64,000 bases of DNA from Selaginella moellendorffii. Its lineage: Eukaryota; Plantae; Lycopodiophyta. How positions within the stretch are numbered: the first letter of the stretch is position 1; each line of letters begins with the position of its first letter. The translations under genes and the position numbers were made by a program. Below are positions 4,349-64,000 of this stretch, in pieces. Below the pieces are notes generated by a model. The model was given only the letters and a program-made list of their open reading frames with translations, was not told the DNA's origin and did not search any database. The DNA lies in the NCBI RefSeq assembly GCF_000143415.4, contig NW_003314360.1, positions 1-64,000 of the forward strand, in the 5' to 3' direction.

Positions 4349-4944
4349 TATGTGAGAACAATCTTTAATTTATAGTAATAAGGTTACATAAGCAATGAGG
4401 TGGCATGTAAATCCAAATAAGCAAATGGGGCCAAAGGGGGGTGTTGTATTGGGCATTCTACCTGTGGTTGAAAAGTGCAGGACCTTAGTCTGGGAGGCCT
4501 TTGGGCAGATTAGGTAGGAGATGTGGAGAGCATTTGGTGTGCAAGTAAGCTCAAAACTACAAGCACTTTGAGGGGGAGAACACTAGGATCTCAATGATTA
4601 TAGCAAATTAGTGGAGGCTCACGTTGGCAGCAGTTTGACTCAAAGAGACAATGTTGCAAGAACATGGTAAGAGAGACACACTCGAGGTGCGGTGAAGGTA
4701 ATTGATCCCATGAGTATGAAGGAGGAATCAAATGGAAGTGAAAACATCCAGATATGGGAAGGAGGCGAGGTGAGGAGACATCGACTTGGACATTCTGAGG
4801 AGGAGACAACCGTAACAATCCCTCTTGGAGGGTAGAGAACACCACAAGACATGTTTTTAGTGAGAGGCAAGATATGAGGGAATAACACCTTGAGGGTGTT
4901 CTTTTTTTTGTAATAGTCCCTAAAAGACCTTGAGAAATGTATGC

Positions 4945-5302
4945 ACTTGCATCCAACCAGAGAACAGTCCCACTTTTTTCAGCGTAACAATCCATGCCTT
5001 TGTCAGGAACAAAGCTCCAATTGAAAGCATGAATCAAGTTAAACAATAGCAATTGAGCAGTCTTCAATCCCAGTGACATCCCTAGACACATTCTTTGGCC
5101 CAGCCCAAAGTCCTGGCCTTTTATGTCAATCAAGTTTTCCCAAGGAACCTTTCCATCCTGAATCACAGTGCATCCTCCCTTACTGCTGGATCTCTTCCAA
5201 TTGTATAACAATTGACAAATGTGGAAGTTCCCTTGGGAATGTCATAGCCAGCAACCTTGCACGCTTCAGTTGACATGTGAATCAGCAGTGGAGCTGGACC
5301 TT
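4945..5302 (-). pseudogene. Cytochrome P450 pseudogene fragment (C-terminal exon), paralog of the P450 at 7716-9259
   Basis: PLLIHMSTEACKVAGYDIPKGTSTFVNCYTIGRD and DIKGQDFGLGQRMCLGMSLGLKTAQLLLFNLIHAFNWSFVP align to exon 2 of the intact P450; stop, frameshift and deletion of ELLPF. Confidence 0.85.
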
Positions 5303-6267
5303 GACGATTGCCCAAGGTACTCCAGTTTGTCAAAGCCTCTCTCTGCAACAAGGCATTCCTTTCCGACGATGGTGTCAATCTAAATTTATATTATAATTTA
5401 TAAACTTTCTTAAGTGTATTTTAAGTAATATGATTAATCTTGTGTTTATAAATTATGTATAAATAGCACACACCATTTCCAATGAAAGAGAAGTATCTAA
5501 GAGGTATATAAGATGTTGAGGTAAAGAGGTGGAAAGATGTAAAGAACAGAAGGAATTTACAAGAAAGAAAAAATATAAGTAATCAATATTCTTTGTCACA
5601 GTTACTCTTTCCAATAGGAAGGATGAATTGATGATCTATTGATATAAAAATTGGTTGCATTTAACAGTCCATGTGAGTGTCTTTGACTTGATATGTTCTT
5701 ATTTTCTTGCTAAACTATTCTGCTGGTCTGCTTAAAACTTAGTGGTCCAACTTTGATGATTTTATGCAATTATTGATCAAGATATTTTATGGAGCCGACA
5801 ATGTAAAAAAGCAACTTATATTGGTCTCATCCTTCTACCTGTTGCAATTTGATTGACATACCACCGAGCTAAAAATATTAAATATCCTGACTAGACTAAG
5901 AAGTTTTCTTGTCTTCCAGGACAGGACACCTGTTTATGGCATTATCTCCCAGGAAACAGCAAGCTTTGAAGGTTTCTTGGACGACCTAGGATTCTAAGCT
6001 TCTAGTCTTCTAAGCTCTGGATGAAATAAGACTGAGCATAGAATACTGCTGACTTCCATATGTGCACCGCGTGAGGAATGGCTTGGCTGGGCGAACAATG
6101 TATATGACAAAGTGCTAGGTGATCATCCGAATTGCGTAAAAAAATCATGGCTGCAGTAAGTTGCAAGGTTGCCATGCATTTTTCATTGATTTTCACTTCG
6201 TATGTAGCTAGTTTACAAAGTAAAGGCCACGCTACTAAGAGAAAAATAGCTGGAAGTACATCGATTT

Positions 6268-7362
6268 TCATATCAAGTTTGATAAATTTTGGATCTGGTT
6301 GAGTTTGTTTGAACTTGCCACCACGTTGCACCTTTTCGGGTCCGACACGATGATGGTGCGCTTTGGATCCAGAATCCAAGTCCCACGAAACGTGCCTCCA
6401 CCCAGTAGGGGGTTATCCATGCCATGGTAGCAGCTGCTCGCATAATGGAACACCAGATTCGCTGGGATTGTGCAGGAGAGAACATCCAGGAACTTCAGGA
6501 AATCTTTCTTCCCATTCCGGGACGCATTCGTGGCAAGGATATCACGGTAATAGATGAATTCGTCTTCCTTGTCCTGGATCATCCTGCACGTAGTGTTCAC
6601 GGCGTCCTGAAACGTCTGCACGCTCGGATCGGTGAGCAGCAGCACCGCCGGAAGATTGTTAAACTTCTTCTTGTAAAACTCCTTGGGAAACGAGAAGACG
6701 TCGTTCACCATCCACATATGATCGAGCATAGCGTTCTGAGCCCTGATGTAATCCAGGGACTCAACATCCTCATCGTCAAACGAAGCACCCATTGCGTAGA
6801 TGAGTGGCAGAATGAAGACGTTCTTCCTCCGGTAGAGCTCGTAGTCCTGCGTTAAGTCGTCACTCGAGATGCTTCTCGCCCAGCCCTCAACAGTGGAAAC
6901 CGTGCGCTTGAACAGCTCCGGCTTCAACAGAGACCTCAAATCCTCCATCAGATCGTGGCACGCTCGATAGGCAAGAATGTCCGGAACTTCCGCGAGCGAT
7001 GCGGTTCCATAGCAGAGGCTAAGAACAGTGTCGAGATACGATGTCGCGAGAGCTCCCGCAGCAACCTCGTTGTCATCAAACGGATCGTTCAGGAAGGCAG
7101 TGAGCCAGGCAAACTTGGCCGACGCCACCATGTTGGCTTTTGGAGCGTGAGGCGTGGAGAGGCACGTAAACATTGGAACTTTCCACTGGACCAGGCATTT
7201 CTTCTCCTCCGGACTGAAATCCCTCCTCATGCATTTGAATGCCCACTCGTTTGCTTCCTTGGTGATTGACATATACTCGGGATGCCTTTGGAAAGGTATC
7301 TCCGGCGTGAGAGCAAAGAGATGTTCTACCGCTGGTAGCTTCTGTAAACACGGACTTGCCAT
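6268..7362 (-). CDS. MTPSL: Microbial terpene synthase-like protein (class I, alpha-domain only), intronless, 364 aa
   Basis: Size and motif layout of bacterial/fungal-type terpene cyclases: Asp-rich motif LNDPFDD, pyrophosphate-sensor region YELYRR, NSE/DTE motif NDVFSFPKE and C-terminal HYASSCY at the RY position; no introns. Confidence 0.92.
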   Translation of the reverse strand: MASPCLQKLPAVEHLFALTPEIPFQRHPEYMSITKEANEWAFKCMRRDFSPEEKKCLVQWKVPMFTCLSTPHAPKANMVASAKFAWLTAFLNDPFDDNEVAAGALATSYLDTVLSLCYGTASLAEVPDILAYRACHDLMEDLRSLLKPELFKRTVSTVEGWARSISSDDLTQDYELYRRKNVFILPLIYAMGASFDDEDVESLDYIRAQNAMLDHMWMVNDVFSFPKEFYKKKFNNLPAVLLLTDPSVQTFQDAVNTTCRMIQDKEDEFIYYRDILATNASRNGKKDFLKFLDVLSCTIPANLVFHYASSCYHGMDNPLLGGGTFRGTWILDPKRTIIVSDPKRCNVVASSNKLNQIQNLSNLI

Positions 7363-7715
7363 TTCTTTAGAGATGGTTTCGAGATATTTTCTTCAATTTA
7401 TGCTGCTAGGTTTCACGTGATCATGCCCAAGAAGTTTCCTGCTTGGACTGACTTTGATTGTGTACAGAAAATAGAACCGGTAGTTGTCAAAGAAAAGGCG
7501 GTCAGTTATTCTCATCTAAACTGCAACGCTTTTTCTTTGGGAGTCTAATGAGTCCATTTATAATGACTTGAAAGATTGTTGTGTAGTCAATTCAAGTGTG
7601 GCACTCGTCAAAGTTGTGGCTGACTAGAATTCTCAACAACCAATCTCAACCAAGTTTGAAGAAGCAAGCATATAATTGCCAAGGGCTATTTGCTTCTCAA
7701 ATCTCAAATCTTCAT
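7363..7715. promoter_or_regulatory. Putative bidirectional promoter between MTPSL and P450
   Basis: 353 bp between divergent ATGs; TATAAT at 7671-7676 (+), TATAAA at 7557-7562 (-), G-box CACGTG 7414-7419, W-box AGTCAA 7585-7590 plus several TGAC cores. Confidence 0.55.
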
Positions 7716-9259
7716 ATGGGGACTCTCCTCTATGTCATAATCTTGCTTGCTTTTGTCTATGTCTTAAGGAAATATTTGCTGCGCCTTAAGCTGCCTCCAT
7801 CTCCATGGGGATTGCCCCTCCTTGGACACCTCCATCATCTCGCAGGAATTCCCTTCCTTTCATTGCATGCCCTGTCCAAGCAGTATGGACCAATTCTCTT
7901 CATGAAGCTGGGAACCGTGCCAGCGGTTGTCATCTCAAGCTCGGTTCTCGCCAAAGAGGTGTTGAGGTCGCAAGATCAGATGTTTGCTTCCAGGCCTTAC
8001 ATCCTCGTTGGAGACTATGGCTTGTACCACTTCCAGGGGATCGGACCTGTCCCTTACAATGATCACTGGAAGATGATGCGAAAGCTCTGCGCCACGGAGC
8101 TTTTCACTCCCAAGAGGATCGACTCGTTTCTCCCAATCAGGCTAGAGGAGATCACCGGCATGTTTTCGGCGCTTCGAGGTGCTGGAGCGCACAAAGCTGT
8201 GGACATGAGGAACATGTTGTCGATCTTCACCTTCAATGTCATGACCCGGATTCTCATGAACAAGAGATTCTTCGAGTACGGGGAGGATGAGGAACACATC
8301 GATGGCGAGGCCAAGCAGTTCAAAGACATTGTGTTCGAGACAGCAGACCAGGGACTCCAGTTTCATATCAGCGAGTTCATCCCGCACTGGCTCCGGTGGA
8401 TTGATTGGAAAGTCCCGGAACTGAAGAGGCTCCATGCGAAGAAGGATAAGTTTCTCCAGAACATCCTTGACCAGCACAAGGACATGGCATCGACAAAGGG
8501 ACACAAGGACTTCATGGACATCATGCTGCAAAATCTAGAGCACAGAGGAGCAGCCAGGGAGGATTTCATCAAGGCAGTAGTCCTTGTAAGTTTCCCCACA
8601 CAACTTGTTTTGGTCACCAATCTCAAAACCATTTTGATCTGCAGGAACTCACCATTGCGGGGACCGATACAAGCGCTTGCATTGTCGAATGGACCCTCCT
8701 GGAGCTCCTTCACAACCCCCGAGTCCTGAGTAAGCTCAAGGAAGAGCTCGATGCAGTGGTGGGATCAAGTAGTCACATGGTCGAGGAGCCCGATTTCCAG
8801 AACCTGGACTACCTCAACGCGGTGATCAAGGAAGCTTTTCGTCTCCATCCACCTCTGCCGCTCCTCATTCCTCACATGTCGACTCAGACTTGCACCATAG
8901 CCGGCTTTCACGTCCCAAAGAATGCCTTCACGTTTGTCAACGTATACTCAATCGGAAGAGAGCGAGGGGTATGGGAAAGGGCGGATGAGTTTTGGCCGGA
9001 GAGGTTTCTTGGTAAGTCCGTGGATGTTAGAGGCCAGGACTTTGAGTTGCTTCCATTCGGATCCGGGCGACGGGCTTGTGCGGGAATGCAGCTGGGCTTG
9101 AAGACTGTCCAGCTTTTGGTGTCCAATTTGGTCCATGCTTTTGACTGGAGCTTTGTTCCAGGCAAACCGAGTGAAGATTACCTCCTTCAAGAACGTCATG
9201 GCACTGTTAACTGGATCAAGACCCCATTACAAGTTTGTGTCGTTCCTAGGACCAGATAG
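7716..9259 (+). CDS. Cytochrome P450, CYP71 clan (A-type), 2 exons (7716-8585, 8645-9259), ~494 aa, intact
   Basis: N-terminal membrane anchor, PPSPWGLP hinge, phase-0 GT-AG intron 8586-8644 just before I-helix AGTDTS, KEAFR (ExxR), FWPERF and heme motif FGSGRRACAG. Confidence 0.95.
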
Positions 9260-9963
9260 CTCTCTTCTGTTTAACTGAAAATAAACCAATCTTTTGGTAC
9301 AATGGATTGAACTATCTCAGGGATGGAGATCTCGGGCTCAACTCGGGCAACAGGATCATCATGTCTGTTGGTACAGAGTGATGTTAATTGGGTGCTGGTA
9401 GTTCCCAATATTTTGCAGTGCTACTTCAAAACCCCTAAGTGATCCTCATTGCTTCTCTATGAAGCATGTAAACATGCTTCACAGACTAGGTATACCAGGC
9501 TCTCTTGAGCTGATCAAAGGGATGTTTCAAGAAGATTGTTATCACAGGCTAGAAACTTGGCTAGTAATCATTCTTCCCCATCTCAGGTATGGCATCAAGC
9601 TTACCATTAGAGCAAACATAAATTGCACTCATTACAGAATTTTTGATATACATTTTCTAGGTCAGTCAACATTGTTGGAAAATCCTTCTTGACTTTTTAC
9701 TACACATCCACCAAGTTCAAACCTTTGATGAAATATTACACCTTTAGCAACTCATTATAAGTGCTTATGAAACTAAGGTAAATATCACGAAATTTGCAAG
9801 TATATGCATTTAAAAACAAAGTCCTCTACCTAATCCTTCTCACTGTTCTGTAGGAGTCAAAGTAAAGCATTGTTTACTTGACCAGAAAAAAGAATGCAAA
9901 TCTCATTCACAGCCTACAACCATTGCAAGAAATTGAGAAATTGGGCTTTGATCCAGCACAGCC

Positions 9964-10308
9964 ATGGGTGTTTTCATCTACTTCAAAGGATGCTGAGGAG
10001 CTACAGGCTTTGGTTTAGGAAGCACTGCCAAAAAGGTTGCACAGAATTGACTAAATTATGTGAATTCATTATCCAACTCTTTGCAATTTCGCATGCAGGG
10101 GCTAGGTCGGGAACTGGGTTTGCGACTGCCAGAGTCTTGGCTAAGTATGGCACCCATGTTGTATTCCAGCCAGAAAATGCAAAGGCAGCAAAGTCTAAGA
10201 TTCAACAAGAAGGAAGCAATATGAAAGTAATACTCTTGGGGTTGGATCTGAGCTCTCTCATGTTGGTAAGGAAGTTTGTCAAAGAATTCAAGGCTTTAAA
10301 CCTTATCC
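9964..10308 (+). pseudogene. 5' fragment of a TIC32-like SDR, paralog of the SDR at 19499-20894
   Basis: MGVFIYFKGC*GATGFGLGSTAKKVA then GARSGTGFATARVLAKYGTHVV...LDLSSLMLVRKFVKEFKALNL, colinear with exons 1-2 of the intact SDR; premature stop, truncated at a Copia remnant. Confidence 0.85.
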
Positions 10309-10600
10309 TAAAGAAGAAAAAAGAAAGAATAGAGCTGGATCTCAAGGTAAATGTATCTAACATGATTAGAGCAACAGATCTATTATACTAGAGCTACTAG
10401 AGGTATTGCATGAGCTAATAAGGAGTGAGCACTGAAGCTAACTAGAGTTAATTGGAGATGGTGGATTCCATTATGTTCCAACACTCCCTTTTCTTGGTGT
10501 GCCACTGACAAGAATGACTCCTAAATTGTGGCAATGATTAGTGAATGTGGACTCTTGGTAAAGGCTTGGTGAGGATATCTGTCATCTATTCATGACTTGA
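10309..10600 (-). mobile_element. Ty1/copia 3' end remnant (RNase H C-terminus, PPT, start of 3' LTR)
   Basis: Minus-strand DILTKPLPR; purine tract AAGGGAG followed by TGTTGG at ~10483. Confidence 0.55.
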
Positions 10601-10611
10601 AAAAGAAATAA

Positions 10612-10735
10612 ATTATTATGATCTGGCGTGAAAAGACAAAAATTCAGTCTTCCTAGACTATGTTACACCTCCTTTTGAGGTTCTTCACCATTTAACCACC
10701 CCCAAACTACCTTAAAAACTCCATTGCACCACCAC
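10612..10735 (-). mobile_element. Partial LTR of the short-LTR Ty3/gypsy family also seen at 15002-15200 and 28336-28568
   Basis: Shared sequence tgaaaagacaaa...ttgaggttcttcacca...accacccc. Confidence 0.65.
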
Positions 10736-11089
10736 TTCTCACCAAGTTTGTCTAAAATATCATCCACACACAATATTAGCATATTATCCTTCACTATTTC
10801 TTGTTCAAGGCACAGTAGTTAATACATATCCGCATTGAAACATCCTTCTTCACAAGCAAAACTAAAGCACCAAATGAAGACTTACTTAGCTGAATAAATT
10901 TAAACTCAAGTAACTTTTTGACTTGTCGTTGAACTTCTTGCTCTTCTACATAACTCAACCGAAATGGATGCCAGTAAATTGGCTACATCCTTAACTCCCT
11001 CTTGGATATGGTGTGTTGCCTTCTTCTGCATTTCAGACTGCCACACAGCTTCTGGGGAGAAGCAGTGAACACGACAGTTTACTTGCGTA

Positions 11090-12720
11090 ACCGTTTGCCC
11101 ACCCGAAGCACAAGCTTGATCCCGCATCACGTTTGGACTGGGAAACGTCCACATTGAGGGCACATCCGGATCCTTGGGTGCAGTGCGTATGCCCGCATCC
11201 CTGATCCGAACAGGCGCAAGCTCGATCCACGCAGCACAAAGACCATCTTCATGGGCTAAGGCCTACCAGCTCTACAAAAGAAGCTTGTAGTGAGCCGCGA
11301 CGTGATTTTCAACGAGCAAGAGCTGTATCGAGACCTCAAAGGTACTTCAAGCATTCAACTGATCTTGTGGATCTTTCTTTGGTTCTGGATAAGGTGCTTC
11401 CTCTTTCGCTCCCAGCTCCAGAGAATTTTCCTCCAGGAGGAGCTAACAACCAAGGCCCACAAGATCCTGGCCGAGCAGTGCCCTTGGTGGCTGGAGGTGA
11501 TGGATCTCCTCCTCACACGCCACTTCTTGCACCTCCAGGAGCCTCTACTGCTTCCACCAGCAGTCCCACTTCTTCAGCTGAGCCCTCGCTTGTTGCCATC
11601 GTCGACGACATTTTTGAAGGCGATGAAATATTTCATCAAGCATCCACCCAGGCCGTTGACCCCGTGATGACTCCTCCACCTCCACAGGTCTTTGGTCCAT
11701 GACATAACCAAGCCTTCAGTCAAAGTGCTTGAGGCCATTGCCCAGGAACCACGATGGAAAGGACAATGCAAGGCCTTCCTGAGCCTCAAGGATATATGGC
11801 CGCTCTTGCCAGTCCTGATGGTCAAAGCAAGAGGTGATGCAAGATGAGTATTCTTCTTTGCTGACACTTGACTCTCATGCCATTGCCATCAAAAGAAGGA
11901 AAGTCGTGAGCTCCAAGTGGCTCTTTAAAGAAGAGCAAGGAAGTACAAGGTGGATGGGAGTGTGGAGCGATTCAAAGTCAGATTTGTCACTCCTGGCTTC
12001 TCGCAAATTCAGGGAGTTGACTATTCTGAGACTTGCGGTCGGGTAGTTAACCTAACCACCATCCGCTTGCTTTTGGTTTTAGCAGCCGAGCTTGATCTTG
12101 AGCTCTATCAACTCAATGTGCGCACATCATTCCTCAATTGTGATCTTGAGGAGGAGGTGTATGTGGCACAGCCTTAAGGTTTTGTCCTTCCAGGCCAAGA
12201 ACACCTCATGTGCCAGCTGCATAAAGCTCTCTATGGGCTGAAACAAAGCCCCAGGTCTTGGTATAACAAGATTAATGGTTTTCTAATTACTCTTGGCTTC
12301 ATATGCAGCTCAGCCGATGGTAATCTCTACATCTACTTTGAAGGTGAAGGATTTCTCTTCCTAGTGCTTTATGTGGATGATATCGCTTCTAACCAAGTCC
12401 AGCTTATTCACAAGATTAAGACATATCTCTCTGCAAAATTCGAGATGGTGGACCTTGGTGAGCTGCATTACTGCCTTGGAATCCAAGTACGACACAACAA
12501 GAGACATGAGATTCTAGAGCTCTCTCAAGAAAAATACATCCTGGATGTACTTCAGAGGTACTCTATGCTCGATGCTAATCTTGTGGCCACTCCTATGCCC
12601 GCAGGCCTTAAGCTTTCTAAAGCTTCTACATCCGAGACATATCGCACTGCCGGAAAAGCGCCAGAACTCTCTACCGTTCGATGGTCGGCAGCTTGATATA
12701 TCTCGTGATTTGAACAAGGC
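11090..12720 (+). mobile_element. Degenerate Ty1/copia pol fragment (post-integrase and reverse transcriptase)
   Basis: SRDVIFNE, ERFKVRFV..GFSQIQGVDY, LHKALYGLKQSPRSW and LYVDD motifs; stops and frameshifts. Confidence 0.9.
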
Positions 12721-14149
12721 CGGATTTGGGGGTGAATTATCAACTAGATTCATCTCAACTGGGCAAGCAAAGACTGGCAAATGCTACAACCTATTCTTCA
12801 CTGGATTGTGATAGGAGAAGAGTATGGCACACTAACACTAGGCACATTAATAGTTTTAATCATTCATGCCCAAGCAAAAAAAGAGGTAAAGGACTCATCC
12901 CAAGATCAACTTAAGTCCTGGAGCATGGCCATTGCAATGCTCTGTGATCAGATCATGGTGTGCATCCTCCACCATCATTACTGTCACTGCCAGCATCAAA
13001 TCCTTGAAGTTGGGCAATTCAGTGTTCAAAATAGTGAACTTGGGTTGCAAACTTTTATGACAATATGGTGGACAAATGCTTCCAAAAAATTGTTATATAG
13101 ACAAGGGAAAAAACAATTCACCAAATTTTTAAAGGGCTTAAATGGCTAAGCCCAGATGGAAAATCTTCTTTTACCATTTACAATAGACAAACCTTATGTG
13201 CACAGCATCCAACTTGAATATATACAACCTATCCAAATAAAATAGTCTTGCAATGAATATTGGTATGTTTTTTACAAGCCATGAATAATAGAGATCATGA
13301 AAAGTTAGGATCCTATTTGGAGAAAAAAGTCCCTTTAATTCAATAACATGGTTATCAACCATCATAAGATTTAGTAGCTTATAGGGACAATATTTCAAAT
13401 TATTAATGATAATCATTAATATAGAGCTTGGATAAAGTGTATTAACATTTATTTTTGTGATGAACCTATCTACCATATTAACATTCCAATTAGCCATGTC
13501 TATATAAGGGTACCAATGTCAACAAATTTATCTTGGCTTACCAAAAGATTAATGCATAATTTTACTAAAATTTCACCTCTACCTCTACTTTAACTTGCTT
13601 TGTTATGGTTGAATGCAGACTTGAGTAATTTTTTGTCCAAAAGCAAAACTTTATTTATGACATTAAGCAATTTTGTTTTTGGGAGACTTGAGTAAGGATG
13701 ACATTTGACAATATTATGGTGATGATCTCACAACACTTATTTAGTACTCATGCACTCGGAATGACAGTATGATATAATTTAACAATTTAATCAATTTTAT
13801 GTGTGCAATGTGGTGCAAAGTATGTCTTTCCTTCACTTTATAAGGGCTTATTTTTATTGGTTTAGTTTATAGCCTTTAGTGAAGGTAAAGCAAAATGTAT
13901 ATAAACTTGTGCATCCGGAAAGAGTCAGAAAGATGTTTTAGCTAAGCTTTTATAAATTGAGCATAATGTAAAGTCTTCAAAGTTGAAAAAAATATATATA
14001 TTATAAATAATTGCAGACCAAAAGAGTGACTAGAGACTATAGCCGAAATTTTTACTCACGAATGTAAGTTTCTTATCATAGGCTTCATTTTTCTCAATTA
14101 TACATATATTACTTTTGTAGTGAATAAAACTTAAAATGATGTAGATTCA

Positions 14150-14995
14150 AGAGGCTCTCTTTGCATGGAGCACAACTAGATGATATTGATCAGGCTCTAT
14201 GTCAACAACACACTAATCATTATGGAGAACATGGTTATTTCACTTGCTGTTAAGGAGTAGTTGTCTTCAAGATTTACTATGGTCAATATTGGACCAATCA
14301 AGTAATGCCTTGGCAGCCAAATTTGTCATTGCAATGATGTCATGGACCTGTCTTAAGCTCATTATGTTTTTGATCTTTTGAATTATTTTCAAATGTAAAA
14401 CACAAAGCTAATACTAACACCAACAACTTCTAGCTACATCCTTGTAGCTCAACACATCAGAGGACCACCATGCTATGATGACTGGTGTTCCATACCAATA
14501 AGCCATTGGCAGCCTACTATACTTAATAGTGTGCACACATCAAGATATCACATTCTTTGTGAGAATTGTCTCCTAGTTCATAGAGAATCCAAGTTGGGAA
14601 CACTAGGTTGCTGTGAAAGGATTTTCCACTACCTTATTAATATTGTCAACTATGGCTTTGTTTATGAAGTTCTAGAGGTAGAGTTCGATTGGAGCAGATA
14701 TGTTGATGCTAACTTTGCTGGAGATCTAGATTTTTGCAAATCCACATTAGATTATTGTTTTAACTTGGGCTTTGCATTGATCATATGGTCCAATAAGAAA
14801 CAGCACATCACCATACTAAAGTAGAGTGTGTGGTGCTGATAGCAATGACACAGGATGCTCTTTGGCTACACAAAAATCTCTTGTGAGAGATTATACCAAT
14901 CTTCTGTGACAATGAGAGTGTTATTGCTCTCACAAAGGACATATGACATCACGGAAAGACAAAACTAGATAACATATTTGTAAGGGAACTTTTAA
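14150..14995 (+). mobile_element. Highly degenerate Ty1/copia RT/RNase H fragment
   Basis: YVDANFAGDLD..KST..Y.F...I.W.NKKQ and IFCDNESVIAL. Confidence 0.75.
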
Positions 14996-15001
14996 TGTTT
15001 A

Positions 15002-17115
15002 TATTAGGCTTCAGCTTTGACCATGTGGTCAATGTTGGTCAAAGGAGGCTCAAGGGTATATTAAGGCATGTTAGGGTAAGGAACTAACAATGGAACTTTT
15101 GAGGTAGCTCAGGGGTGGTTGGGTGGTGAGGAACCTCAAAAGGAGGTGTAGTGTAGTCTATGAAGACTAGATTTTTGTCTTTTCGTGCCAGATCATAACA
15201 TTGGTATCAGAGGGAAGTTGGTTACGATGGCCAACCAAGCTGAACGCTGGAATCCTATTGTTAATGGTGGTGACGGAGCTATAAAGGTTTGGACCATTCA
15301 AGATGTTGTTCATGAGCTGTAAGCCCTTAACTGAAATCAACAAGAGATGCAAGATGAGATGCATGGCATGATGGATACCATGTGTGAGTGTGTTGAATCA
15401 CTCGAGGCTGAACGTGGTAGCGTTCCAAGTAAGCCTTCTTTGGTAGATCAACTCAAGATTCCAACTTTTTCCAGTGATGGTGGTGTGAACGAGTGTCTCG
15501 CTTGGCTAGCCAATGTGAAAAAGTTCTTGGCTGCTAGAGGAACTCTAGATGCAAAGGTTTTAGTGGCTATTCCAATGGTTTTGTGTGATGCAGGTATTTG
15601 GTGGTGGAATTGGCTTAAAAATCCTATGTTGCGGATAAAAAACCACCAAATGAGTTTGAGGTTGCTTTTCATCTATGTTTTGCCCCTTATTATGACATGA
15701 AGAATGCTCATATAGAACTTCAACATTTTCAGCAAGGAAAAATGACGCCCGAGAACTATATTAAGAAGTTTATTCACTTGATTAGTCATGTTTCCACAAA
15801 GGATCTAGATCAAAGCAAGTCCTACTTCATTAATGGCCTTCATAGTGAGAGTATGTGGCAACACTTATATCATTCTTAGTCTACAAAGAATTTGGAGGAG
15901 CTCTTTGATACAGCTCATCAACTTTACAATGACAAGCACAAATCTTGCAAGCATTCGAGGAGTTCTTCTGTCAAGAATCGTCATGATGATTATCATGGAC
16001 ACAAGGATGGAAACAAGCATCACAAGCTAAAGTTTTTGGTGGTTACTTTGGATGCAAAGGGGTCAAAGAAGCAGAAGTTCTTTGTGAAGAATTATAAACA
16101 GGGTTGTCATTATTGTGGTGAGCTCAGACATTACAAGGCTGATTATCCACAGTTGAAAAACAAGCAACAGAGCAAGAAGAATGGTCAATCTTCTACTGAC
16201 GGTAAGTTAGATATTAAAAAGTTGCAAACTTTGCAATATAAAGATAATGGGGATGATCATTTTAGTCGAAGGAAGAGGCTTTCGATCATTGCTCATCAAC
16301 TCAATTGTGTTTGGAACAGGATGGAGCCCGAGGACACTCGTGAATCAATTTTAATGCTGAGTGGCTGTCAAGTGTGGATTTTACTAGATAGCAGGAGCGA
16401 TGACAACTTTGTTTCGACAAAGTTTGTTGCAGAGCATGGCTTGGTGACACAAAGAGTTCTTCCATATACAGTGGAAGGTGTAGCTACCTTTGCTCAGCAT
16501 TTCAATGCTTGTGTAGTGGGGCTGGAAATGTTGGTTGGCAAAACCACACTTCTGGAGACTTTTTATCTTGCGGATATTATTATCAATAAAAATATATTAA
16601 GTTTAATAAAAGTTTGTATATGTTTTTATCAATTTTTACCACTTTCAAAATATTTCTACCACTATTTATAACATTCTTGATATTTGTTGTAAAAGTTAGA
16701 ACAATTGACATATTGGAAAGCTCTTTATAAAGACAACCACTAATTAAGATAGAAATTTTATAGAGTCAAATATCCAAAGCTTTTTTTGGGGATTTTTGGG
16801 ATGCCATGGTTGGTGAAGGTGGATCTGGAGGTAAAGTGGAGTATTAAACGTGTCTTGCTGGAGTACAGTGGTGTTAAAGATGTGTGGTTTGGAGAGGGAA
16901 TTTAACCTCCAGTTATTATGCTCTCTACTACATCTTTAGAGTGGGTTTGTCATAATGGAAAACCACTTTCGAATTACTTATTATTTGTTCGTGACTTGGG
17001 GGACCAAGGCACGTGTGGGTGAGAAGCAACAATATGGAATATACTTGACGAGTTTATTGATGTTTTTCCATCCTCATGGGTTGCCTCCATTATGAGGTGT
17101 GGAACATGGGATTAC
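15002..17115 (+). mobile_element. Degenerate Ty3/gypsy element: 5' LTR (15002-15200), tRNA-iMet PBS, gag and protease; truncated at a Copia element
   Basis: LTR ends ...ATAACA followed by TTGGTATCAGAG (15201-15212); gag PTFSS..WL, zinc knuckle CHYCGELRH, protease LLDSRSDDNFV resuming as IFGMPWL after a ~210 bp AT-rich insert (~16580-16790). Confidence 0.85.
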
Positions 17116-18922
17116 ATTCGTTTGGTTAAACCTCTCAACCACACCATTCTGCTGTGGTGTATAAACAACTATGTACTGATGAGAAATTCCTGCCTCAGCT
17201 AGGAATTGGAGAAATCCTTGTGCAATGTATTCTCCTCCTCCATCTGTGCGTAGCACATGGATTTTTCTTCCTGTAAAATTTTCTGCCCAGCTTTTGAAAA
17301 TTTTAAAGTTTTCAAAAACTTCGGATTTGTTTCCTACCAAACACACCACTGTGTATCGTGAGTGATCATCTATGAATGAAACAAAATACCTCTTTCCACT
17401 TAGGAAATTTACAGGAAGATAGCAAACATCTCTGTGAATAAAATCAAGCACTACTGTGGCCTGGTTTTCCAAGGGTCGGGGAGGAAAAGGATGGCGTGCA
17501 TGTTTGCCAAATTGGCAAGTATTGCAAAGTCCCAGATGTCCAGATGGAAATGCGATGCCATCAGCTAGCTTGCTGTGAGCAAGGTTCTGGAGATCCTTCT
17601 CATTTACATGCCCGAGACGAGCATGCCAAAGATGAATTGTCTCTTGGCCTTGAAGTGCTAGCATGTATGTCCCTGGATAAACAAGCTCTGCGTTGAGGCG
17701 ATAGAGTGTATCGTACCTCACTCCAGTTGCCACAGTGGTGCCATCTGCTCCAAAAACAGTACATCCTTCTGCAAAGAATGTGATTGAGAACCCTTGATCG
17801 GAGGCGACGCCAACCGAAAGGACAGTCTGGCCTGCACCGGGCACATAGTGCATGTTATGGATTTCCTTGAGAGATCCATTGGGCAACTTCACTTGCACCA
17901 TGCCACGGCCTTCAACGTCGAGAAGCCGCTTGTCTCCAACAAAGACTTGGTTTGGGGAAAGCAATTCGTGGAAAGTGTGGAATGCTGTACGAAGAGGAGT
18001 CATGTGGTAAGAAGCACCACTGTCCAACCAGAGGACGTCTAAACCAGACACCGGTGACGAGGCCACGGCCATCATCAGCAACGAGTCTGTTTGAGTTAGC
18101 ATCCGTTGGGTGTTTGCTTTCTTAGCTCGACATTCTTGCTCTATGTGCCCCATCTTCCCGCAGTAGGTACACGGCCCCTTCTTTTTCTTGTTTCCATTTG
18201 TGGTGGAGCCAGGTGTTGGTGTCGCAGGAGCACTGGCAAATCCGCGAGAATTCCCACGCTTCTTGGCATTTCCATTTCCTGACTTCTTGCTGATGAACAA
18301 AGCCTGATCACGAGCAGAATCTGAGGAGGTCGTGCCTGCTTTTCGCTCCAGAAGCTTGCGCTCTTCTTCCAAGAGATTGGAATAGATCGTCTAGGGTCTT
18401 TCCTGGAACGAAGGAGAACATGGAGGAAGACGGTTGGAGTTCAGAAGAAACCGAATAGAGAAGGAAAGCTTTGGCATAATCGTCCGAGACAGGCGCGCCA
18501 GCCTCCTTAAGCTCTTGCATCATCCCCTTAAGCTTGCCAATGTACGATGCCATCGTGTCTGTTGGCTGCATCCGGAGAGAAAGGAACTTCTGGGTTAAGG
18601 ACGATCATGGCATTTGCTGCTTTCGCAGCAAACACCTGCACCAAGGACTACCAATTCTCGTGAGCGGTCTTCGAGAGATCCAGCAGATGGATGAACTCGT
18701 CGCCGAGTCCTAAGCCAAGCGGGCTCTTCTATTCTTGGCTTTCCACACTGGCTGGAGAGCGGGCTCAGCTGGTTCAGCTTCGGTGCCGTCCACGATTGTC
18801 CAGCAATCGTTTGCCATCAAGATGAGCTGGACCTTTGTTCTCCAGGTTGCGAAGTTTTCTCCTGTGAATTTGTGTAGTAGTTTCTCCCAGCTTGGGGTTA
18901 CAGCAGCGGAAGAAGATGCCAT
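17116..18922 (-). mobile_element. Ty1/copia gag-protease-integrase, frameshifted and 3'-truncated
   Basis: KFTGENFATW gag start, CTYCGKMGHIEQEC knuckle, WLDSGASYH protease, LWHARLGH..CNTC, integrase core FIDDHSR / RTDGGGEY / PQQNGVVER. Confidence 0.92.
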
Positions 18923-19213
18923 CTAAAGTTAGCGCTAGAAACAGAAATTTTATTGACGGGAGTGAGACGCGGGGAAAGTGCACACGCGCCTACACTGTGG
19001 GCAAAGCTGCTCGTGGCGTTTCGGAGAAGCATTTAGAACGAGATACCGCTGGGACTGTTATTTGGAACTCCGCTCCAAGTCATGGTCACTCCCGAAGAGG
19101 TACTATTAGGCTGATTGATAAACATAAGTACGGAGATTCCAGCATTGATCCAAAGGTATAATAAGCATGCCTGATGAGTGAGGCGCAACAGAAATACGTC
19201 TCTACCGTCGTCG

Positions 19214-19313
19214 NNNNNNNNNNNNNNNNNNNNNNNNNNNNNNNNNNNNNNNNNNNNNNNNNNNNNNNNNNNNNNNNNNNNNNNNNNNNNNNNNNNNNNN
19301 NNNNNNNNNNNNN
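19214..19313. other. Assembly gap (100 N, true size unknown)
   Basis: Run of exactly 100 N. Confidence 1.
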
Positions 19314-19498
19314 TCATTGCCACGCTTTTCCTGGGCCGTTCACTTTACTGGTTTGCCGTCAAAATGGTCCAAACTCAAGAGTAAACTGATGTAGAAGGAA
19401 GTTTAGCTTTTCTTTTGAAAAATGTTTCAAATTGAAAATAAAAGCTCCTCATTCAAAAATAAACGCAGGCCAAAACTTTGAAAGAAAATTAATGTAAC

Positions 19499-20894
19499 TC
19501 AAGGATGAGACTTGATAAACTCCTCACTAAAAGTCCACAGCTCTGCAGCCAACTTCATGTCCTTGGCATGAGGGGTGCAATCCGCTTCGTTGCAATCCAA
19601 GTAGTACTTTCCACTCACGCCCTCCATGCAAGGATGGACCGCAAGAAGCATGGTTGTAGCAGCGCCCTGAAAGAAATCACAGCTTTAATCCAGAAACGTA
19701 GGCTATGATATGTTTGTACCTGCGGGATGGATTTGCAAAGTGGGCTCGCGAGGAAGAGAAGCAGCTCTGCACAGCAGCACAAGTTGATCAATCTCAATTC
19801 TTTTCAGATACTGTTTCATGAACTTACTAGCTGAAGTCTGATTGAAATCTCTTCCAAGTTTCGTCTTGATAGTTCCAGGATGAAGTGAATTTACAGTCAC
19901 GTTGGCACCCTTCTCCTGAAATGGAAGATCATCAAAATTATGTCTGGGAAAACTCGAGCACAAAAACTTTGAATCTATGGGCACCTTCAAGCGGCTTGCT
20001 AACTCCCTGGTATGCAGTATGTTGGCCAGTTTGGATCTTCCGTAGCTAGTAATCCATTGGAAGCTGCACGACGAGAGTTAAAGAAAGTTCATTGGAAGAT
20101 TGCAAGGAAAACCGAAATGCTTCCTCCTAATTGTCAATGAAAAAACTGACCTGTTCTTATCATTCAGCTTGTCAAACTCAATCCCGCCTTTTGGAACATA
20201 TCTGTGACCTTCAGACGCCACCATGACAATCCGACCTTGCACTCCAGTTTGAGATGCAGTCTGGATCATCTTGTCCAACAGCAGCTCAGTGAGCAAAAAC
20301 GGACCTGGATCATCATCCAAAGAGTGAAGGTTTTTCTAACAGACAAAACTTGAACACCATACCCATATGGTTTGTCGCGAAATCGAGCTCCAAGCCATCC
20401 GGTGAGAGCTGGAAGTTATTGGCCGTCATCCCAGCATTGTTTCTGCATTGATCCATGCATTTTGATCAGAAACACTAACAGGAGTGACTCACATGAGGAT
20501 GTGGAGCGGGAGATTTAGAGCCTTGAAGTCGTCGACAAATTTCCTGACCGACTTGAGGGAGCTCAGATCCAGCTCAAGGACAGTGACCCTTGCATTAGGG
20601 AATTCGCGTTGGATCTTGGACTTGGCTGCTTCAGCGTTCTGTAGCTTCCTGGCTGGGATAACAACGTGCGCACCGTGCTTGGCGAGAACTCTGGCAGTCT
20701 CAAACCCAATTCCGGAGGTAGCCCCTGTAGCTTGATGATAAGAAATCGAAGCAAACTATCGATGGAATTGGCATACCTGTGACGATTACCACTTTGGATT
20801 CCAGAGAAATCCCCTTTGCAACTTTCTCGGCTGTAGCTCCCGATCCAAAGCCTGTAGCGCCGCGGTATCCTGTGAAGTAGCTTATCACGCCCAT
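19499..20894 (-). CDS. TIC32-like/retinol dehydrogenase-type classical short-chain dehydrogenase/reductase, 8 exons, 321 aa, intact
   Basis: Exons 20777-20894, 20493-20724, 20363-20442, 20151-20304, 19985-20063, 19828-19915, 19720-19766, 19499-19666 (966 nt, all GT-AG introns). Motifs [20 protein letters not shown], catalytic YGRSK, LHPG and QGAATT. Confidence 0.93.
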
Positions 20895-21386
20895 GATTCC
20901 TGGATTGCTTGCAAAGACTTGTGACTTTGATCCCGAGACGGCTGCTTAAATACATTCCTGGCCAGCTTGACCGACGCGCAAATGTGACATCCACGAAAGC
21001 GCTTAGAGAAGATTCTGAAACATTCGGTCAATTTGGAATGGCGGTTGATTACAAGGTATTATCAATCAATAACCATGACGATTCATTGCTCAAACAACAC
21101 GTCGACTGACGTACATAATGTCCATGCATGACCTTTGTTCACCGCGCAAACGCCACTTTGATATCTCAGCGTGTGAAAAGTCGCCTGGGCGCCATTGCTC
21201 GAATTTTCAGCCCTCTAAAGAACATGTCAATGTCAAACCCAGCGAGCGAATGAAAACCGCGGCTTCCAACTGATATATAAATGGTTGCTTGCTGTGCCGA
21301 AGTCATTGACAAAGCTACATCTCGAGATCGATCAGCAAAAGAAAGCACAGCTCTCTTTCTCTCAGCCCTGTAAAGGTTCTTCAAGG
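20895..21386. promoter_or_regulatory. Putative bidirectional promoter between SDR and FAD oxidase
   Basis: 492 bp between divergent ATGs; TATATAAA at 21274-21281 (+), TATTTAA at 20946-20952 (-), W-boxes TTGACC 20967-20972 and GGTCAA 21026-21031. Confidence 0.55.
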
Positions 21387-23063
21387 ATGATAGCGATACT
21401 ATCGATATTCTTGGTCGTTCTATTTGCTCCCGGCCATGTCCACTCCAAGTGTATAGCGGGCGAGCTGTGCTGGCCAGACGCACAGACCTGGGCATCCTTC
21501 AATCGCTCCGTGGGAGGGAGAATGATCAGCGTGGCCCCTCCAGCATCGCCATGCCATGATCCAAACTACGACGAGCGAGCCTGCAACGCCGTGAGGAGCG
21601 GCGGGAACAGTCCGTTCTGGAGGACTGATCAACCGGGTGCGCTGCAACGGACGAGCTGGGAATCGTTTGGGGAGCAGCGCTGCCTGATCTCCTCCAACAG
21701 GACCGCCGCTTGCTTCCAGGGCGCGGTCCCGGTCTACGCGGTCAACGTTACTCGGGCGGTCCACGTCCAAGAGGCCGTCAAGTTTGCGTCCCGGCACGAC
21801 TTGCGCATCGTGATACGAAACACGGGGCATGACTTCCTCGGGCGGAGCACGGCGGTGGGAGCTCTCAGCATTTGGGTGCACCACCTCCAGAAGATCCAGT
21901 TCCACGAGAGCTTCAAATGCAGCCGTGGTAGCGACCGTGGCTACTCGGCAGTGACGGTGGGAGCTGGAATTCAGTGGGAGGAGCTCTATCGGCAAGCGTA
22001 TCAACGAAAGATGATCCTGGCTGGCGGGGGATGTTCCTCGGTTGGAGCAGCTGGCGGATACCCTCAAGGTGGCGGCCAAAGTTTCCTTTCCCCGCTAATC
22101 GGCTTGAGCGCCGATAACGTTCTCGAGTACGAGGTGGTGACCGCGGATGGTAGGCTTGTCAAAGCAAATGCATGCCAAAACACGGACTTGTTCTGGGCTC
22201 TCCGGGGTGGCGGAGGAGGAACATTCGGAGTTGTGCTCTCGGTGACGCACAGGACTTTTCCAGCTCTTGACAGCCTCGTCTTCGCTCCTCACAACTTCAA
22301 CGCCCCCGATACCACCACCTTTCAGGGGCTGCTCACTCTGTTTACAAGGTTGAATCCCTCTCTGTCCGATGCCGGCTGGTCTGGCTACTTTTTCTCGACG
22401 AGCCAGAGCCTGACGCTAACGTTCCTGCTGCCCAACCGGAACGTCTCGTATGCTTCCACCACCTTGGCCCCGCTGCTATCGTACGCGCGGGAGAACAACA
22501 TCCGGATCGACGGGAGCTTGGAGACGTATGCCTCGTACTGGGACTGGCACTTGCAGTTTCAGTGTGGAGGGCAGGAATCGTGCTTGGGCCTCAACAACTT
22601 GGGAGTCTCGGATGTCTTCGCAACGAGGCTGATCCCGAGATCGCTCTTCAACCACGAACAAGACCTCCTCCCAAAGGCCATGATGCACATCATGACCGAG
22701 CTGCAAGTTCCAGCTACGTATGCGATCCTGGGGGGCGGAAAAGTGCGAGAACCCCAAGACAGCGCTGTGAATCCGGCGTATCGCGACGGACTGTGGCTGC
22801 TCGTATCGCCCCTGACTTGGCGGGACAATGCGACGGTGGCGGAGATGAGGGCTGCTGCGAATCTAGTGTCGCAGGCGAACAAGCTCTTCATCGATCTCAC
22901 GCCGGGCTCCGGGACTTACGTGAACGAGGCCGATTACAACGAGCCCAATTGGCAGCAATCCTTCTTTGGGAAGAACTATCCTCGCCTGTACCACATCAAG
23001 CGCAGGGTCGATCCTACCAATCTCTTTACGTGCCATCACTGCGTGGGTAGCGAATTCAACTGA
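21387..23063 (+). CDS. Secreted FAD-linked oxidoreductase (VAO/BBE superfamily, FAD_binding_4 + BBE domains), fungal-type, intronless, 558 aa
   Basis: Signal peptide MIAILSIFLVVLFAPGHVHS; RNTGHDFLGRS (histidyl-FAD), GGGCSSVGAAGG, LFWALRGGGGGTFGVV, YVNEAD and FFGKNYPRL..IK...DP.NLF.C..CVGSE. Confidence 0.93.
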   Translation: MIAILSIFLVVLFAPGHVHSKCIAGELCWPDAQTWASFNRSVGGRMISVAPPASPCHDPNYDERACNAVRSGGNSPFWRTDQPGALQRTSWESFGEQRCLISSNRTAACFQGAVPVYAVNVTRAVHVQEAVKFASRHDLRIVIRNTGHDFLGRSTAVGALSIWVHHLQKIQFHESFKCSRGSDRGYSAVTVGAGIQWEELYRQAYQRKMILAGGGCSSVGAAGGYPQGGGQSFLSPLIGLSADNVLEYEVVTADGRLVKANACQNTDLFWALRGGGGGTFGVVLSVTHRTFPALDSLVFAPHNFNAPDTTTFQGLLTLFTRLNPSLSDAGWSGYFFSTSQSLTLTFLLPNRNVSYASTTLAPLLSYARENNIRIDGSLETYASYWDWHLQFQCGGQESCLGLNNLGVSDVFATRLIPRSLFNHEQDLLPKAMMHIMTELQVPATYAILGGGKVREPQDSAVNPAYRDGLWLLVSPLTWRDNATVAEMRAAANLVSQANKLFIDLTPGSGTYVNEADYNEPNWQQSFFGKNYPRLYHIKRRVDPTNLFTCHHCVGSEFN

Positions 23064-23156: not shown

Positions 23157-24697
23157 ATGGGGCTCCTTGGTTTCGTTCTTGGGCTCTGGATTGCCATTCT
23201 AGCAGCTGCCAAGACGGTGAAGCGAGACGGTGAGTCGATCCTCTCCAGCTGCATTTTCGTCTTGCCAATTCCAGTCAAGGCATTGAACGAGCTCAAGGCA
23301 GCTGGAGGATGGAAGGTTATGTACGCTTGGAATGGGGAGGATCCCTGTGGGGATGGAGACGCGGCATTGTGGCCGGGAATCACTTGTTCCTCCCCAAATG
23401 ACGATGGCTATCGAGTGGTCACGGAATTGTGAGTTTTAATCGTCACTTTCTTCTTTCTTTCCAGGGAGCTCTTTCAAGTGTCGATCATTGGAACGTTCCC
23501 GATCGGTGTCACAAATTTGCTGGATCTCAGGAAACTGTGGGTTGGTCTGTGTTGATTTTCGTTTACTGAGTTCTTGCGTTCTTCTCTGGAAGGGACTTGC
23601 ATGGCAACAAACTCACCGGACCGATTCCTCCTCAAATAGGACGGTTGGAGAAGCTTGTAACCCTGTAATGTTATTGCTAGCGGTCTGGCCGAAAAATTCT
23701 CGACTTATTTTGCTTTTTTCTTTGCAGGAACTTGAGATGGAGCAAGCTGCCTGTTGAGATTGGGCAGCTGAAGAAACTACAAAACTTGTGAGTAGAGTTT
23801 CGCTTCTGTTCTAAGTTCTTTTTTTCATCGTGTCTGTCTGTCAGGTTTTTAAGTTTTAACAGCCTTAGAGGACCTATACCGAAGGACCTCACGTATCTGC
23901 AGGAGCTTCGATACGTGCATCTTCACGAGAACAAGCTTATCGGCCGGATCCCTCCGGAGTTTGGAGAACTTCCTTATCTCTGACAATTATAAGCTTCAGT
24001 TTTATCCATACAGACATATTTTCTTATATTATTCTCTCGCAGGGATGTCAGCAACAATCATCTTATGGGAACCATCAGAGAACTGCTAAGAAGCGAACAG
24101 AATCGTGCTCAAGAGGCATTTCCATCTCTACGAAATTTGTAAGCTTTTCTTCTTTTGTGCTTAGATTCTTAAGCTCGACGTCCCCGCAGGTACCTAAACA
24201 ACAATTACCTCACCGGAGGAATACCAGCAGAACTTTCGTACTTGTGCAATCTAGAAGTTCGATGCTAGAGTTGTCCTTGCCTGCTGATTCCCTCCGTGGT
24301 TATGCAGGTACTTGTCTAACAACAAACTTACAGGTCCGGTACCGGACGCACTCGCAAGCATCCCGAAGCTAACCTACCTGACGCCTCCATCAATTTTTCT
24401 CATGCAAAAGCTCTTTTTTCTCGTAGATACCTGGATCACAATGCTTTGAATGGCCGACTATCGTCAGCCTTCTACAGCCATCCGAGCCTGAAAGAGATGT
24501 ACGTTGGCTCTTTGGCTTGATCATCTATGTAGTAGTATCCAAGCGTTTCTTTTTCCAGGTATATTGAAGGGAGCCAATTCAGCTCTTCCGCCAAACCAGT
24601 TGGTATACACAGGACAAGGCATCATCGTCCCACATGCTACAGTTACTATCGTATACTAGCAACAATGGAAGTATCCGACGCTGACTTCATTTTTTAG
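23157..24697 (+). pseudogene. Secreted plant-type leucine-rich-repeat protein gene (At5g61240-like), probably pseudogenised
   Basis: Signal peptide, KTVKRD/VKALNE..W.G.DPC..W.GITC LRRNT, multiple LxxLxLxxNxLxGxIP repeats and C-terminal EVSDADF; in-frame TGA at 23981-23983 and eroded donor sites (e.g. ATAAG after 23988). Confidence 0.8.
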
Positions 24698-27668: not shown

Positions 27669-28099
27669 TAATAAAGTATAAATTTCTTATTATAATAATT
27701 CCATCATGGTTGTGTATATTAGGTGGATCAATGATGTGGGCTATATTTTGCCATGTTATGCAGAAGCAATGGCACAAGCTCATATAGAACAAGAGCCCAT
27801 AGTTAGAGAGCATAATACTATACAAACTCCTCCTTTTATGGATGTGGATGCTGAGGAAGACTAAGTTTAGTTTTTTTTTAATCAAATTTTTTAGTGGTAA
27901 TATAGAGTTTCTTCTTTGACTTATGATATTTTTTTTCTTATTGGACTTATATTATTTAGCTTTTTCTTGGACTGAAAATATGTCTTAAGTGTTTAATAGA
28001 ATTGTTAGTTCATCCCGAACCAATCATTTGAATATCAACTTTTGTATTTGGTGGACTATATTGACTTTCAACCCAAAAACTACCCAGCCCCCTAAGAAA

Positions 28100-63764: not shown

Positions 63765-64000
63765 TCTTCATCAGCAATAGGAATGTTAGTGTCAAGTTCT
63801 GGCTTGTCAAGAAGAAATACCTAGACCAGTCTGCATCGGACAAAGAAGGATTCAACCTCATGAACAGAGTAAGCAGCCCCTGAAAGGTGGTGATATCAAG
63901 GGTGCTGAATTTGTGAGGAGCAAAGATGTCAAAAGCTGGAAATGTCCTGTGTTTTGCCAAGAGCACAACTCCAAATTTTCCTCTGCTGTCACCCTGGAGA
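63765..64000 (-). pseudogene. Degenerate copy of the FAD-linked oxidase (internal fragment, continues beyond the window)
   Basis: FGVVLLAKHRTFPAFDIFAPHKFSTLDITTFQGLLTLFMRLNPSLSDADWSRYFFLTSQNLTLTFLL closely matches the product of 22200-22435; truncated at the 3' side. Confidence 0.9.

Follow-up and report, generated by a model that had tools for sequence, protein, structure and literature searches.

The first 64 kb of a 658-kb scaffold of the spikemoss Selaginella moellendorffii (GL377664.1:1-64000, assembly GCA_000143415.2; hereafter the window) contains, at 4.9-24.7 kb, a roughly 20-kb block of which this species has at least three diverging copies. Four enzyme genes of the block lie inside 6268-23063: a microbial-type terpene synthase gene (MTPSL), a CYP71-clan cytochrome P450, a short-chain dehydrogenase (SDR) and a flavin adenine dinucleotide (FAD)-linked oxidase. 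Their physical linkage agrees with the operational definition of a plant biosynthetic gene cluster, namely at least two, usually at least three, linked non-homologous biosynthetic genes including the scaffold-forming enzyme. An initial annotation of this DNA had proposed such a cluster, and its physical observation is largely right: the candidate cluster is real and structurally plausible, while the functional reading is unproven and, for this copy, weakened. The best overall explanation, in which our confidence is slightly better than even, is that the block is duplicated and differently decaying, that the MTPSL of this copy is impaired, and that any pathway is split over the copies. The placement on the scaffold follows from two loci, one surrounding the MTPSL and one the oxidase, which correspond one-to-one to GL377664.1:1-17362 and 11387-33063.

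In the orientation reverse to that of the window, the block is composed of a leucine-rich repeat (LRR) protein gene, the oxidase gene head-to-head with the SDR gene, a P450 gene head-to-head with the MTPSL gene, and a second P450 gene downstream. The copy at GL377616.1:1.18-1.20 Mb (L007) contains the LRR gene, an oxidase of 558 amino acids (98% identical), the SDR and, 5.2 kb further on, the MTPSL SELMODRAFT_421420 (372 amino acids, expressed) with a downstream P450 remnant. Its alignment with the window extends to 24289, and its head-to-head P450 is present as fragments only. The copy at 1.385-1.430 Mb (L005+L004) contains an oxidase (558 amino acids) head-to-head with the SDR, several P450s, and an MTPSL relic between P450s that is truncated and carries a frameshift. 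It also has another MTPSL, 93% identical and broken near residue 279, as well as a second oxidase. Two loci are partial copies: in L006 the oxidase is frameshifted and accompanied by fragments of P450 and SDR genes, and L002, found 150 kb along the same scaffold as the window, contains two MTPSLs and P450s that have decayed. The unit P450(-), MTPSL(+), P450(+) is found in four places. The four families, which the initial annotation had noted together, do occur together in three block copies, and both L007 and L005+L004 back their linkage.

Segmental duplication and unequal recombination, in DNA rich in transposons, have multiplied the block. Synonymous divergence (dS) between the copies is 0.013-0.057, and the ratio of non-synonymous to synonymous divergence (dN/dS) is 0.27-0.41 for the MTPSL, SDR and oxidase genes. 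The copies decay differently, each having lost a different member. In addition, the older relatives of two of the genes have unrelated neighbors. The next-closest MTPSL (84% identical, intronless; L008, GL377620.1:13185-34288) lies among RuBisCO activase, PPR, IFT and NIPA genes, and PPR and lectin-kinase genes surround the next-closest oxidase (50% identical). These neighborhoods indicate that the association arose once, so its recurrence across the copies counts as one event and not as several. We regard the block structure and its single-origin duplication as highly probable. The position of the lone L008 MTPSL among housekeeping genes is also consistent with the dispersal of single MTPSL copies.

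The MTPSL of the window (SELMODRAFT_428151/XP_024519167.1; 6268-7362, minus strand) is an intronless open reading frame (ORF) of 364 amino acids, 100% identical to a S. moellendorffii RefSeq protein. It adopts a single alpha-domain class I fold, with PF19086 (Terpene_syn_C_2, E 4e-12) at residues 84-267 and no plant beta or gamma domains. Microbial terpene synthases are the nearest solved structures, and together with the single PF19086 domain they bear out the description of the enzyme as microbial-type. Its Asp-rich motif reads NDPFD (residues 92-96, within FLNDPFDD), whereas the alignment gives FLDDPFDD in all close paralogues. The window copy thus departs from the DDxxD/DDxxxD pattern that serves as the criterion for an MTPSL, and the expressed sibling SELMODRAFT_421420 has DDPFD. 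Moreover, the window protein has two private 4-residue deletions near the N-terminus, in stretches present in every paralogue. The second metal-binding motif (NSE/DTE), NDVFSFPKE, is intact and invariant among the paralogues. The first Asp of the class I terpene synthase motif coordinates the Mg ions that ionize the diphosphate, and its loss usually lowers activity. Among Andrographis class I terpene synthase (TPS) sequences, NDxxD is listed beside DDxxD, with no activity data for those members (PMC12114178), so the D92N change need not abolish activity. The four genes had been called intact, which is correct for all four reading frames; beyond the frame, the substituted Asp-rich motif sets the MTPSL apart.

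Downstream of the MTPSL, a C-terminal remnant of the second P450 is located at 4954-5297 (minus strand), recognized by tblastn (it aligns with residues 360-481 of the window P450 at 55-57% identity) and by the Pfam p450 domain. The RefSeq model XP_024519167.1 (407 amino acids, 5163-7362, minus strand) fuses the MTPSL to this remnant and so acquires a chimeric C-terminus, while the plain ORF ends at 6268. Our RNA evidence consists of contigs from four runs, one from each of four studies, aligned to window positions 4900-10400, which hold the MTPSL-P450 pair; such contigs demonstrate presence and cannot prove absence. No contig from the four runs spans 4900-6170, and the RefSeq splice between the MTPSL and the P450 remnant is therefore unsupported. 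Likewise, none of the four runs yielded a contig matching the window MTPSL. The sole MTPSL contig, from run X2, has 22 differences from the window in 1117 positions. Its translation is identical to SELMODRAFT_421420 on GL377616.1 at 339 of 339 residues, with Asp at position 92, which rules out that this contig is an allele of the window gene. The window copy of the MTPSL looks impaired and silent.

The head-to-head partner of the MTPSL is a P450 of 494 amino acids on the plus strand (exons 7716-8585 and 8645-9259), supported by the Pfam p450 domain and an annotated product of 494 amino acids. Its 59-nt intron (8586-8644, GT..AG), located by a change of frame in the I-helix, is exactly removed in contigs of all four runs, which confirms both that the runs are RNA and that the P450 gene model is correct. 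The protein contains the heme motif PFGSGRRACAG, the ExxR motif as EAFR, the PERF motif, and an N-terminal anchor followed by a Pro-rich hinge (MGTLLYVIILLAF...PPSP). Its closest solved structures are isoflavone synthase (CYP93C), ferruginol/sugiol synthases (CYP76AH) and C4H (CYP73A), with E values from 1e-38 to 1e-48. This agrees, at the level of clan, with the earlier assignment to the plant CYP71 clan. A second transcribed P450 variant was found in run X5 (window 7860-9302), with 14 differences, two of them non-synonymous, and a different 5' end. The dN/dS between this variant and the window P450 is 0.045, which places the window P450 under strong constraint. None of the loci retrieved contains this variant, which represents an allele missing from the assembly or a further copy of the gene. 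The loose 5' end of the X5 contig has no match anywhere in the window and so reveals no upstream exon there.

The divergent start codons of the MTPSL and P450 genes are separated by a spacer of 353 bp (7363-7715), in which a TATA-like box precedes the P450 ATG by about 40 bp. The blastn end points against L002, L004, L006 and L007 place duplication breakpoints in the middle of this spacer, at about 7491-7549. With breakpoints inside the spacer, the MTPSL and the P450 each carry their own proximal upstream DNA. Moreover, the MTPSL copies are 84-97% identical, whereas their head-to-head P450 partners are 40-60% identical. Taken together, the mid-spacer breakpoints and the far greater likeness of the MTPSLs characterize the pair as a recombination mosaic and not as a conserved divergent-promoter unit. 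No RNA contig from the four runs covers the spacer region 7289-7713. P450 contigs are present in all four runs, the sibling MTPSL of the other locus in one, and the window MTPSL in none. A bidirectional promoter shared by the two genes would predict the opposite pattern, though contigs are evidence of presence only.

These observations bear on the simplest functional interpretation, in which the window copy is itself a working four-gene cluster whose own MTPSL makes the scaffold, whose P450, SDR and oxidase tailor it, and whose genes are co-regulated through divergent promoters. Four intact ORFs within 17 kb in two head-to-head pairs, the same families together in three block copies, and an MTPSL dN/dS that is not fully relaxed (0.27-0.41) are all in its favor, as are the intact NSE motif and the occurrence of NDxxD in some class I TPS sequences. 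We nevertheless consider it quite improbable: transcripts were recovered for the P450 and not for the window MTPSL, D92N and the two deletions are private to this copy, the breakpoints split the 353-bp spacer and leave no conserved shared promoter unit, and the partner P450 has decayed in the very copy whose MTPSL is expressed. The chimeric four-gene pathway to an oxidized terpenoid that had been proposed for this locus likewise found no support, given the RNA pattern, the NDPFD motif and the differing losses per copy.

In the second head-to-head pair, the SDR gene (19499-20894, minus strand) encodes 321 amino acids in eight exons: 20894-20775, 20722-20495, 20444-20361, 20302-20153, 20065-19985, 19915-19829, 19767-19720 and 19666-19499. 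The model is supported by frame translations, by an annotated product of 321 amino acids with the adh_short domain, and by a spliced coding sequence that translates cleanly. It was fixed by conserved exon blocks and the annotated length; brute-force chaining of GT-AG introns gave many equally stop-free solutions and was discarded as uninformative. The spliced product contains the TGxxxGIG cofactor site, NNAG and the Ser...YxxxK catalytic set, the latter with YGRSK. With single exons only as queries, the best matches are the families PRK06197, PRK05854, PRK06196 and LPOR, together with POR structures, all below whole-protein cut-offs. A putative membership in this PRK06197/POR-like group is consistent with the earlier description of the SDR as TIC32-like, at the level of these exon matches; we take it to be so partly from a C-terminal GAATT...GKYY motif, which we presume to be characteristic. 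The SDR coding sequence is 99.4% identical to that of the L005 copy (dN/dS 0.30). A spacer of 492 bp (20895-21386) separates the divergent start codons of the SDR and oxidase genes, and this head-to-head pair is kept in both L005 and L007. The two spacers, 353 and 492 bp, substantiate the two head-to-head pairs seen at first reading.

The oxidase gene (21387-23063, plus strand) is intronless and encodes a protein of 558 amino acids that exactly matches the annotated product; it is a secreted-type, MtVAO615-like member of the VAO/BBE superfamily. It has an FAD_binding_4 domain (PF01565, E 1e-20), a C-terminal BBE domain (PF08031, E 6e-14) and a hydrophobic, signal-peptide-like N-terminus. The match to the fungal enzyme MtVAO615 covers residues 16-556 (E 2.6e-88), whereas plant BBE-like proteins match at about 1e-23 and in the FAD domain only. 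The oxidase motifs NTGHD and GGCSSVG align to NTGHD and GTCPTVG of MtVAO615, and we take the aligned His and Cys to be the sites of covalent flavin attachment, as in the family generally. The dN/dS against the L005 copy is 0.31. Both the SDR and the oxidase of the window are intact and under purifying selection.

The best relatives of the oxidase outside Selaginella are fungal (Calcarisporiella, 48%; Basidiobolus; Mortierella, about 41%), followed in the homologue list by ferns, a moss and bdelloid rotifers. In a tree of 33 sequences, the Selaginella paralogues form one clade (support 99/97), and the plant sequences group together weakly (66/75) inside a group of Mucoromycota, Basidiomycota and rotifers, with ascomycetes and chytrids outside. 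The full-length MtVAO615 match, the fungal best hits and the nesting of plant sequences among fungal ones uphold the view of the enzyme as fungal-type. The family is old and expanded in Selaginella and is also present in ferns and a moss. It had been suggested that two microbial-type genes were each paired with a native plant gene; the adjacency stands, but the oxidase, from an old and expanded family, does not qualify as a newly paired gene. If the oxidase was transferred at all, the tree and the distribution of homologues would make the event ancient, before the large Selaginella expansion, with no recent co-arrival with the MTPSL. Transfer of the whole cluster from a fungus is rejected: plants have long possessed the oxidase family, and the P450 and SDR genes are of plant type and interrupted by spliceosomal introns. 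The bdelloid rotifers Adineta, Rotaria and Didymodactylos carry close relatives of the oxidase, grouped as a single clade in the tree, which probably reflects another transfer of this family between kingdoms. In addition, the oxidase paralogue beside the L004 MTPSL (L004:14602-16255) is a mosaic, 96% identical to the window oxidase in its C-terminal half and 64.5% in its N-terminal half, which suggests recombination or gene conversion between paralogues.

An alternative account dispenses with a shared pathway. In it, a duplication-prone region rich in transposons would hold a tandem array of P450s, the SDR-oxidase pair and an LRR gene; a mobile, intronless MTPSL would have been copied into this region, and the later duplication of the block would give the association its recurrent look. 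This account draws on the single origin of the association, on the identity levels of the MTPSLs and their P450 partners, which suggest younger MTPSLs in an older P450 array, on P450 expression that is not tied to MTPSL expression, and on the signal peptide of the oxidase, which implies a different compartment. It has more difficulty with two observations: four families typical of terpenoid tailoring near a terpene synthase have the look of known plant terpenoid clusters, and over three duplications an MTPSL and the SDR-oxidase pair have remained intact and linked while evolving under purifying selection. We hold this account to be less likely than not.

The two gene pairs are separated by transposon debris (10999-19211; Pfam RVT_2, rve and gag), which includes a copia reverse transcriptase (RT) piece at about 10999-12727 (plus strand) and a copia gag-integrase piece at about 17074-18922 (minus strand). 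These fragments, together with the right half of the window, which is rich in retrotransposons, match the TE-rich setting (rich in transposable elements) described initially. In L005 the copia element is contiguous (4471-7981), whereas blastn shows about 10999-17565 of the window to be inverted with extra DNA; the RT part lies about 4.8 kb away from the gag-integrase part, with other DNA between them. This arrangement represents a real inversion, a nested insertion or a local assembly error. No pair of long terminal repeats was found between the gene pairs, which leaves the copia insertion undatable. Within the debris there is also an inverted repeat of 111 nt (10616-10726 and 15088-15198), 84% complementary, with its arms 4.4 kb apart.

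An assembly gap of 100 N (19214-19313) lies outside any coding sequence, with the copia gag region on one side and the SDR stop codon on the other, and hence no reading frame crosses it. The gap, the copia DNA rearranged relative to L005, and the position of the window at the end of a scaffold in a two-haplotype draft assembly raise the question of an artefact, in which the pairs were wrongly joined across the gap, or repeats were collapsed, and the genes are not true neighbors. Both gap flanks are, however, collinear in order and orientation with L005, which has 13 nt at this place, and the order and orientation oxidase-SDR ... MTPSL are the same in the independently assembled L007 (0 N) and L005+L004. 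These agreements make a mis-join unlikely, and we consider the artefact highly improbable.

We therefore return to the duplicated, differently decaying block as the best explanation. If its families do act together, a cytosolic MTPSL would form a sesquiterpene from farnesyl diphosphate, a P450 anchored in the endoplasmic reticulum would hydroxylate it, the SDR would oxidize or reduce the new alcohol or carbonyl group, and the oxidase, with its signal peptide, might oxidize an alcohol further within the secretory pathway. By now the parts still working would be spread over the block copies and act in trans. That at least the MTPSL and P450 families of the block share a pathway is possible, and we hold it tentatively, at less than even confidence; that all four families share one pathway is unlikely. 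The fullest version, a lycophyte-specific sesquiterpenoid pathway in which a fungal-like MTPSL and a MtVAO615-type oxidase stand beside a CYP71-clan P450 and an SDR in a multi-copy birth-and-death cluster, with genes split between copies or haplotypes and working in trans (the P450 of the window copy, the MTPSL of the SELMODRAFT_421420 copy), is also doubtful in our estimation.

Several points weigh against the explanation we favor. D92N is a warning and not proof that the MTPSL is inactive, and the window MTPSL may be weakly expressed, or expressed in tissues or elicitation states outside the four runs. The copies on GL377616.1, such as L007, are either paralogues of the window or its other haplotype. 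Co-duplication alone is weak evidence of shared function, and neither the sequence nor the RNA contigs yielded evidence linking the four enzymes biochemically.

Other features of the window lie around the four genes. Next to the oxidase, the annotation calls an LRR-protein gene (23157-24697, plus strand; 343 amino acids, LRR Pfam hits), which is a member of the duplicated block, and a gene of 331 amino acids without Pfam hits (26034-27864), so the statement that the window holds only four intact host genes in 64 kb has to be abandoned. The LRR gene directly follows the oxidase in at least two block copies (window 23157-24697 and L007:1-1124). A decayed N-terminal SDR fragment is located at 9964-10310 (plus strand), with 65-67% tblastn identity to SDR residues 1-113 and a weak adh_short match, and no RNA contig from the four runs covers it. 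At the far end, a piece of an oxidase paralogue (63775-63999, minus strand; 71% tblastn identity over 77 amino acids) is truncated by the window edge. Along with the P450 remnant described above, these two pieces account for the decayed duplicates reported nearby.

Among known systems, the MpMTPSL2-MpCPT5 cluster of Marchantia polymorpha is a characterized MTPSL-centered cluster (bioRxiv 10.64898/2026.07.16.738752), and the earlier remark that no such cluster had been characterized is out of date. Like the spikemoss pair, it consists of a non-seed-plant MTPSL and a non-homologous biosynthetic gene, arranged head-to-head with a short spacer between them, and it is flagged as a biosynthetic gene cluster. 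Its partner is a substrate-supplying cis-prenyltransferase, whereas the spikemoss partners are tailoring-type enzymes. Moreover, a bidirectional promoter, co-expression, knockouts and H3K27me3 control have been demonstrated in Marchantia, whereas the spikemoss MTPSL and P450 were not co-detected in RNA. Dictyostelium discoideum is cited in the same preprint as having a terpene synthase-P450 pair with a bidirectional promoter that converts discoidol to discodiene (cited in bioRxiv 10.64898/2026.07.16.738752). As described there, the likeness is a microbial-type single-domain terpene synthase divergent with a P450; the difference is that the amoebozoan pair is functionally proven, whereas the spikemoss pairing is positional only.

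The four families of the window were also compared with clusters of seed plants and fungi. Seed-plant terpenoid clusters that combine TPS, CYP and SDR genes, such as the rice momilactone cluster, are well known. They resemble the spikemoss locus in that genes for a scaffold-forming terpene synthase, a CYP71-clan P450 and an SDR lie no more than tens of kb apart. They differ in using a classical plant TPS and in being co-induced and biochemically linked, whereas the spikemoss has an MTPSL, a fungal-type FAD oxidase and several decaying copies. Fungal sesquiterpenoid clusters, such as the aristolochene/PR-toxin cluster, contain a terpene cyclase, P450s, an SDR and an FAD-linked oxidase. These are the same four enzyme classes, and the spikemoss synthase and oxidase belong to fungal-like families; the spikemoss P450 and SDR, in contrast, are plant-type with spliceosomal introns, and its oxidase comes from an old expanded plant family. 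A search of the literature library used retrieved no paper describing an MTPSL with a clustered P450, SDR and FAD oxidase, nor one describing this locus or naming its gene identifiers. In that literature the gene composition is an undescribed variation on known clusters, in candidate form only.

If the four families form no pathway, the locus would be a caution that segmental duplication in this genome can make a chance neighborhood resemble a conserved cluster. If they do form one, the locus would be the first terpenoid cluster of plants to combine an MTPSL with clustered tailoring enzymes that decorate its product, and would have two fungal-like families wired to native plant enzymes. The differently decayed copies would then provide a natural series on how a plant cluster forms, is duplicated and dies.

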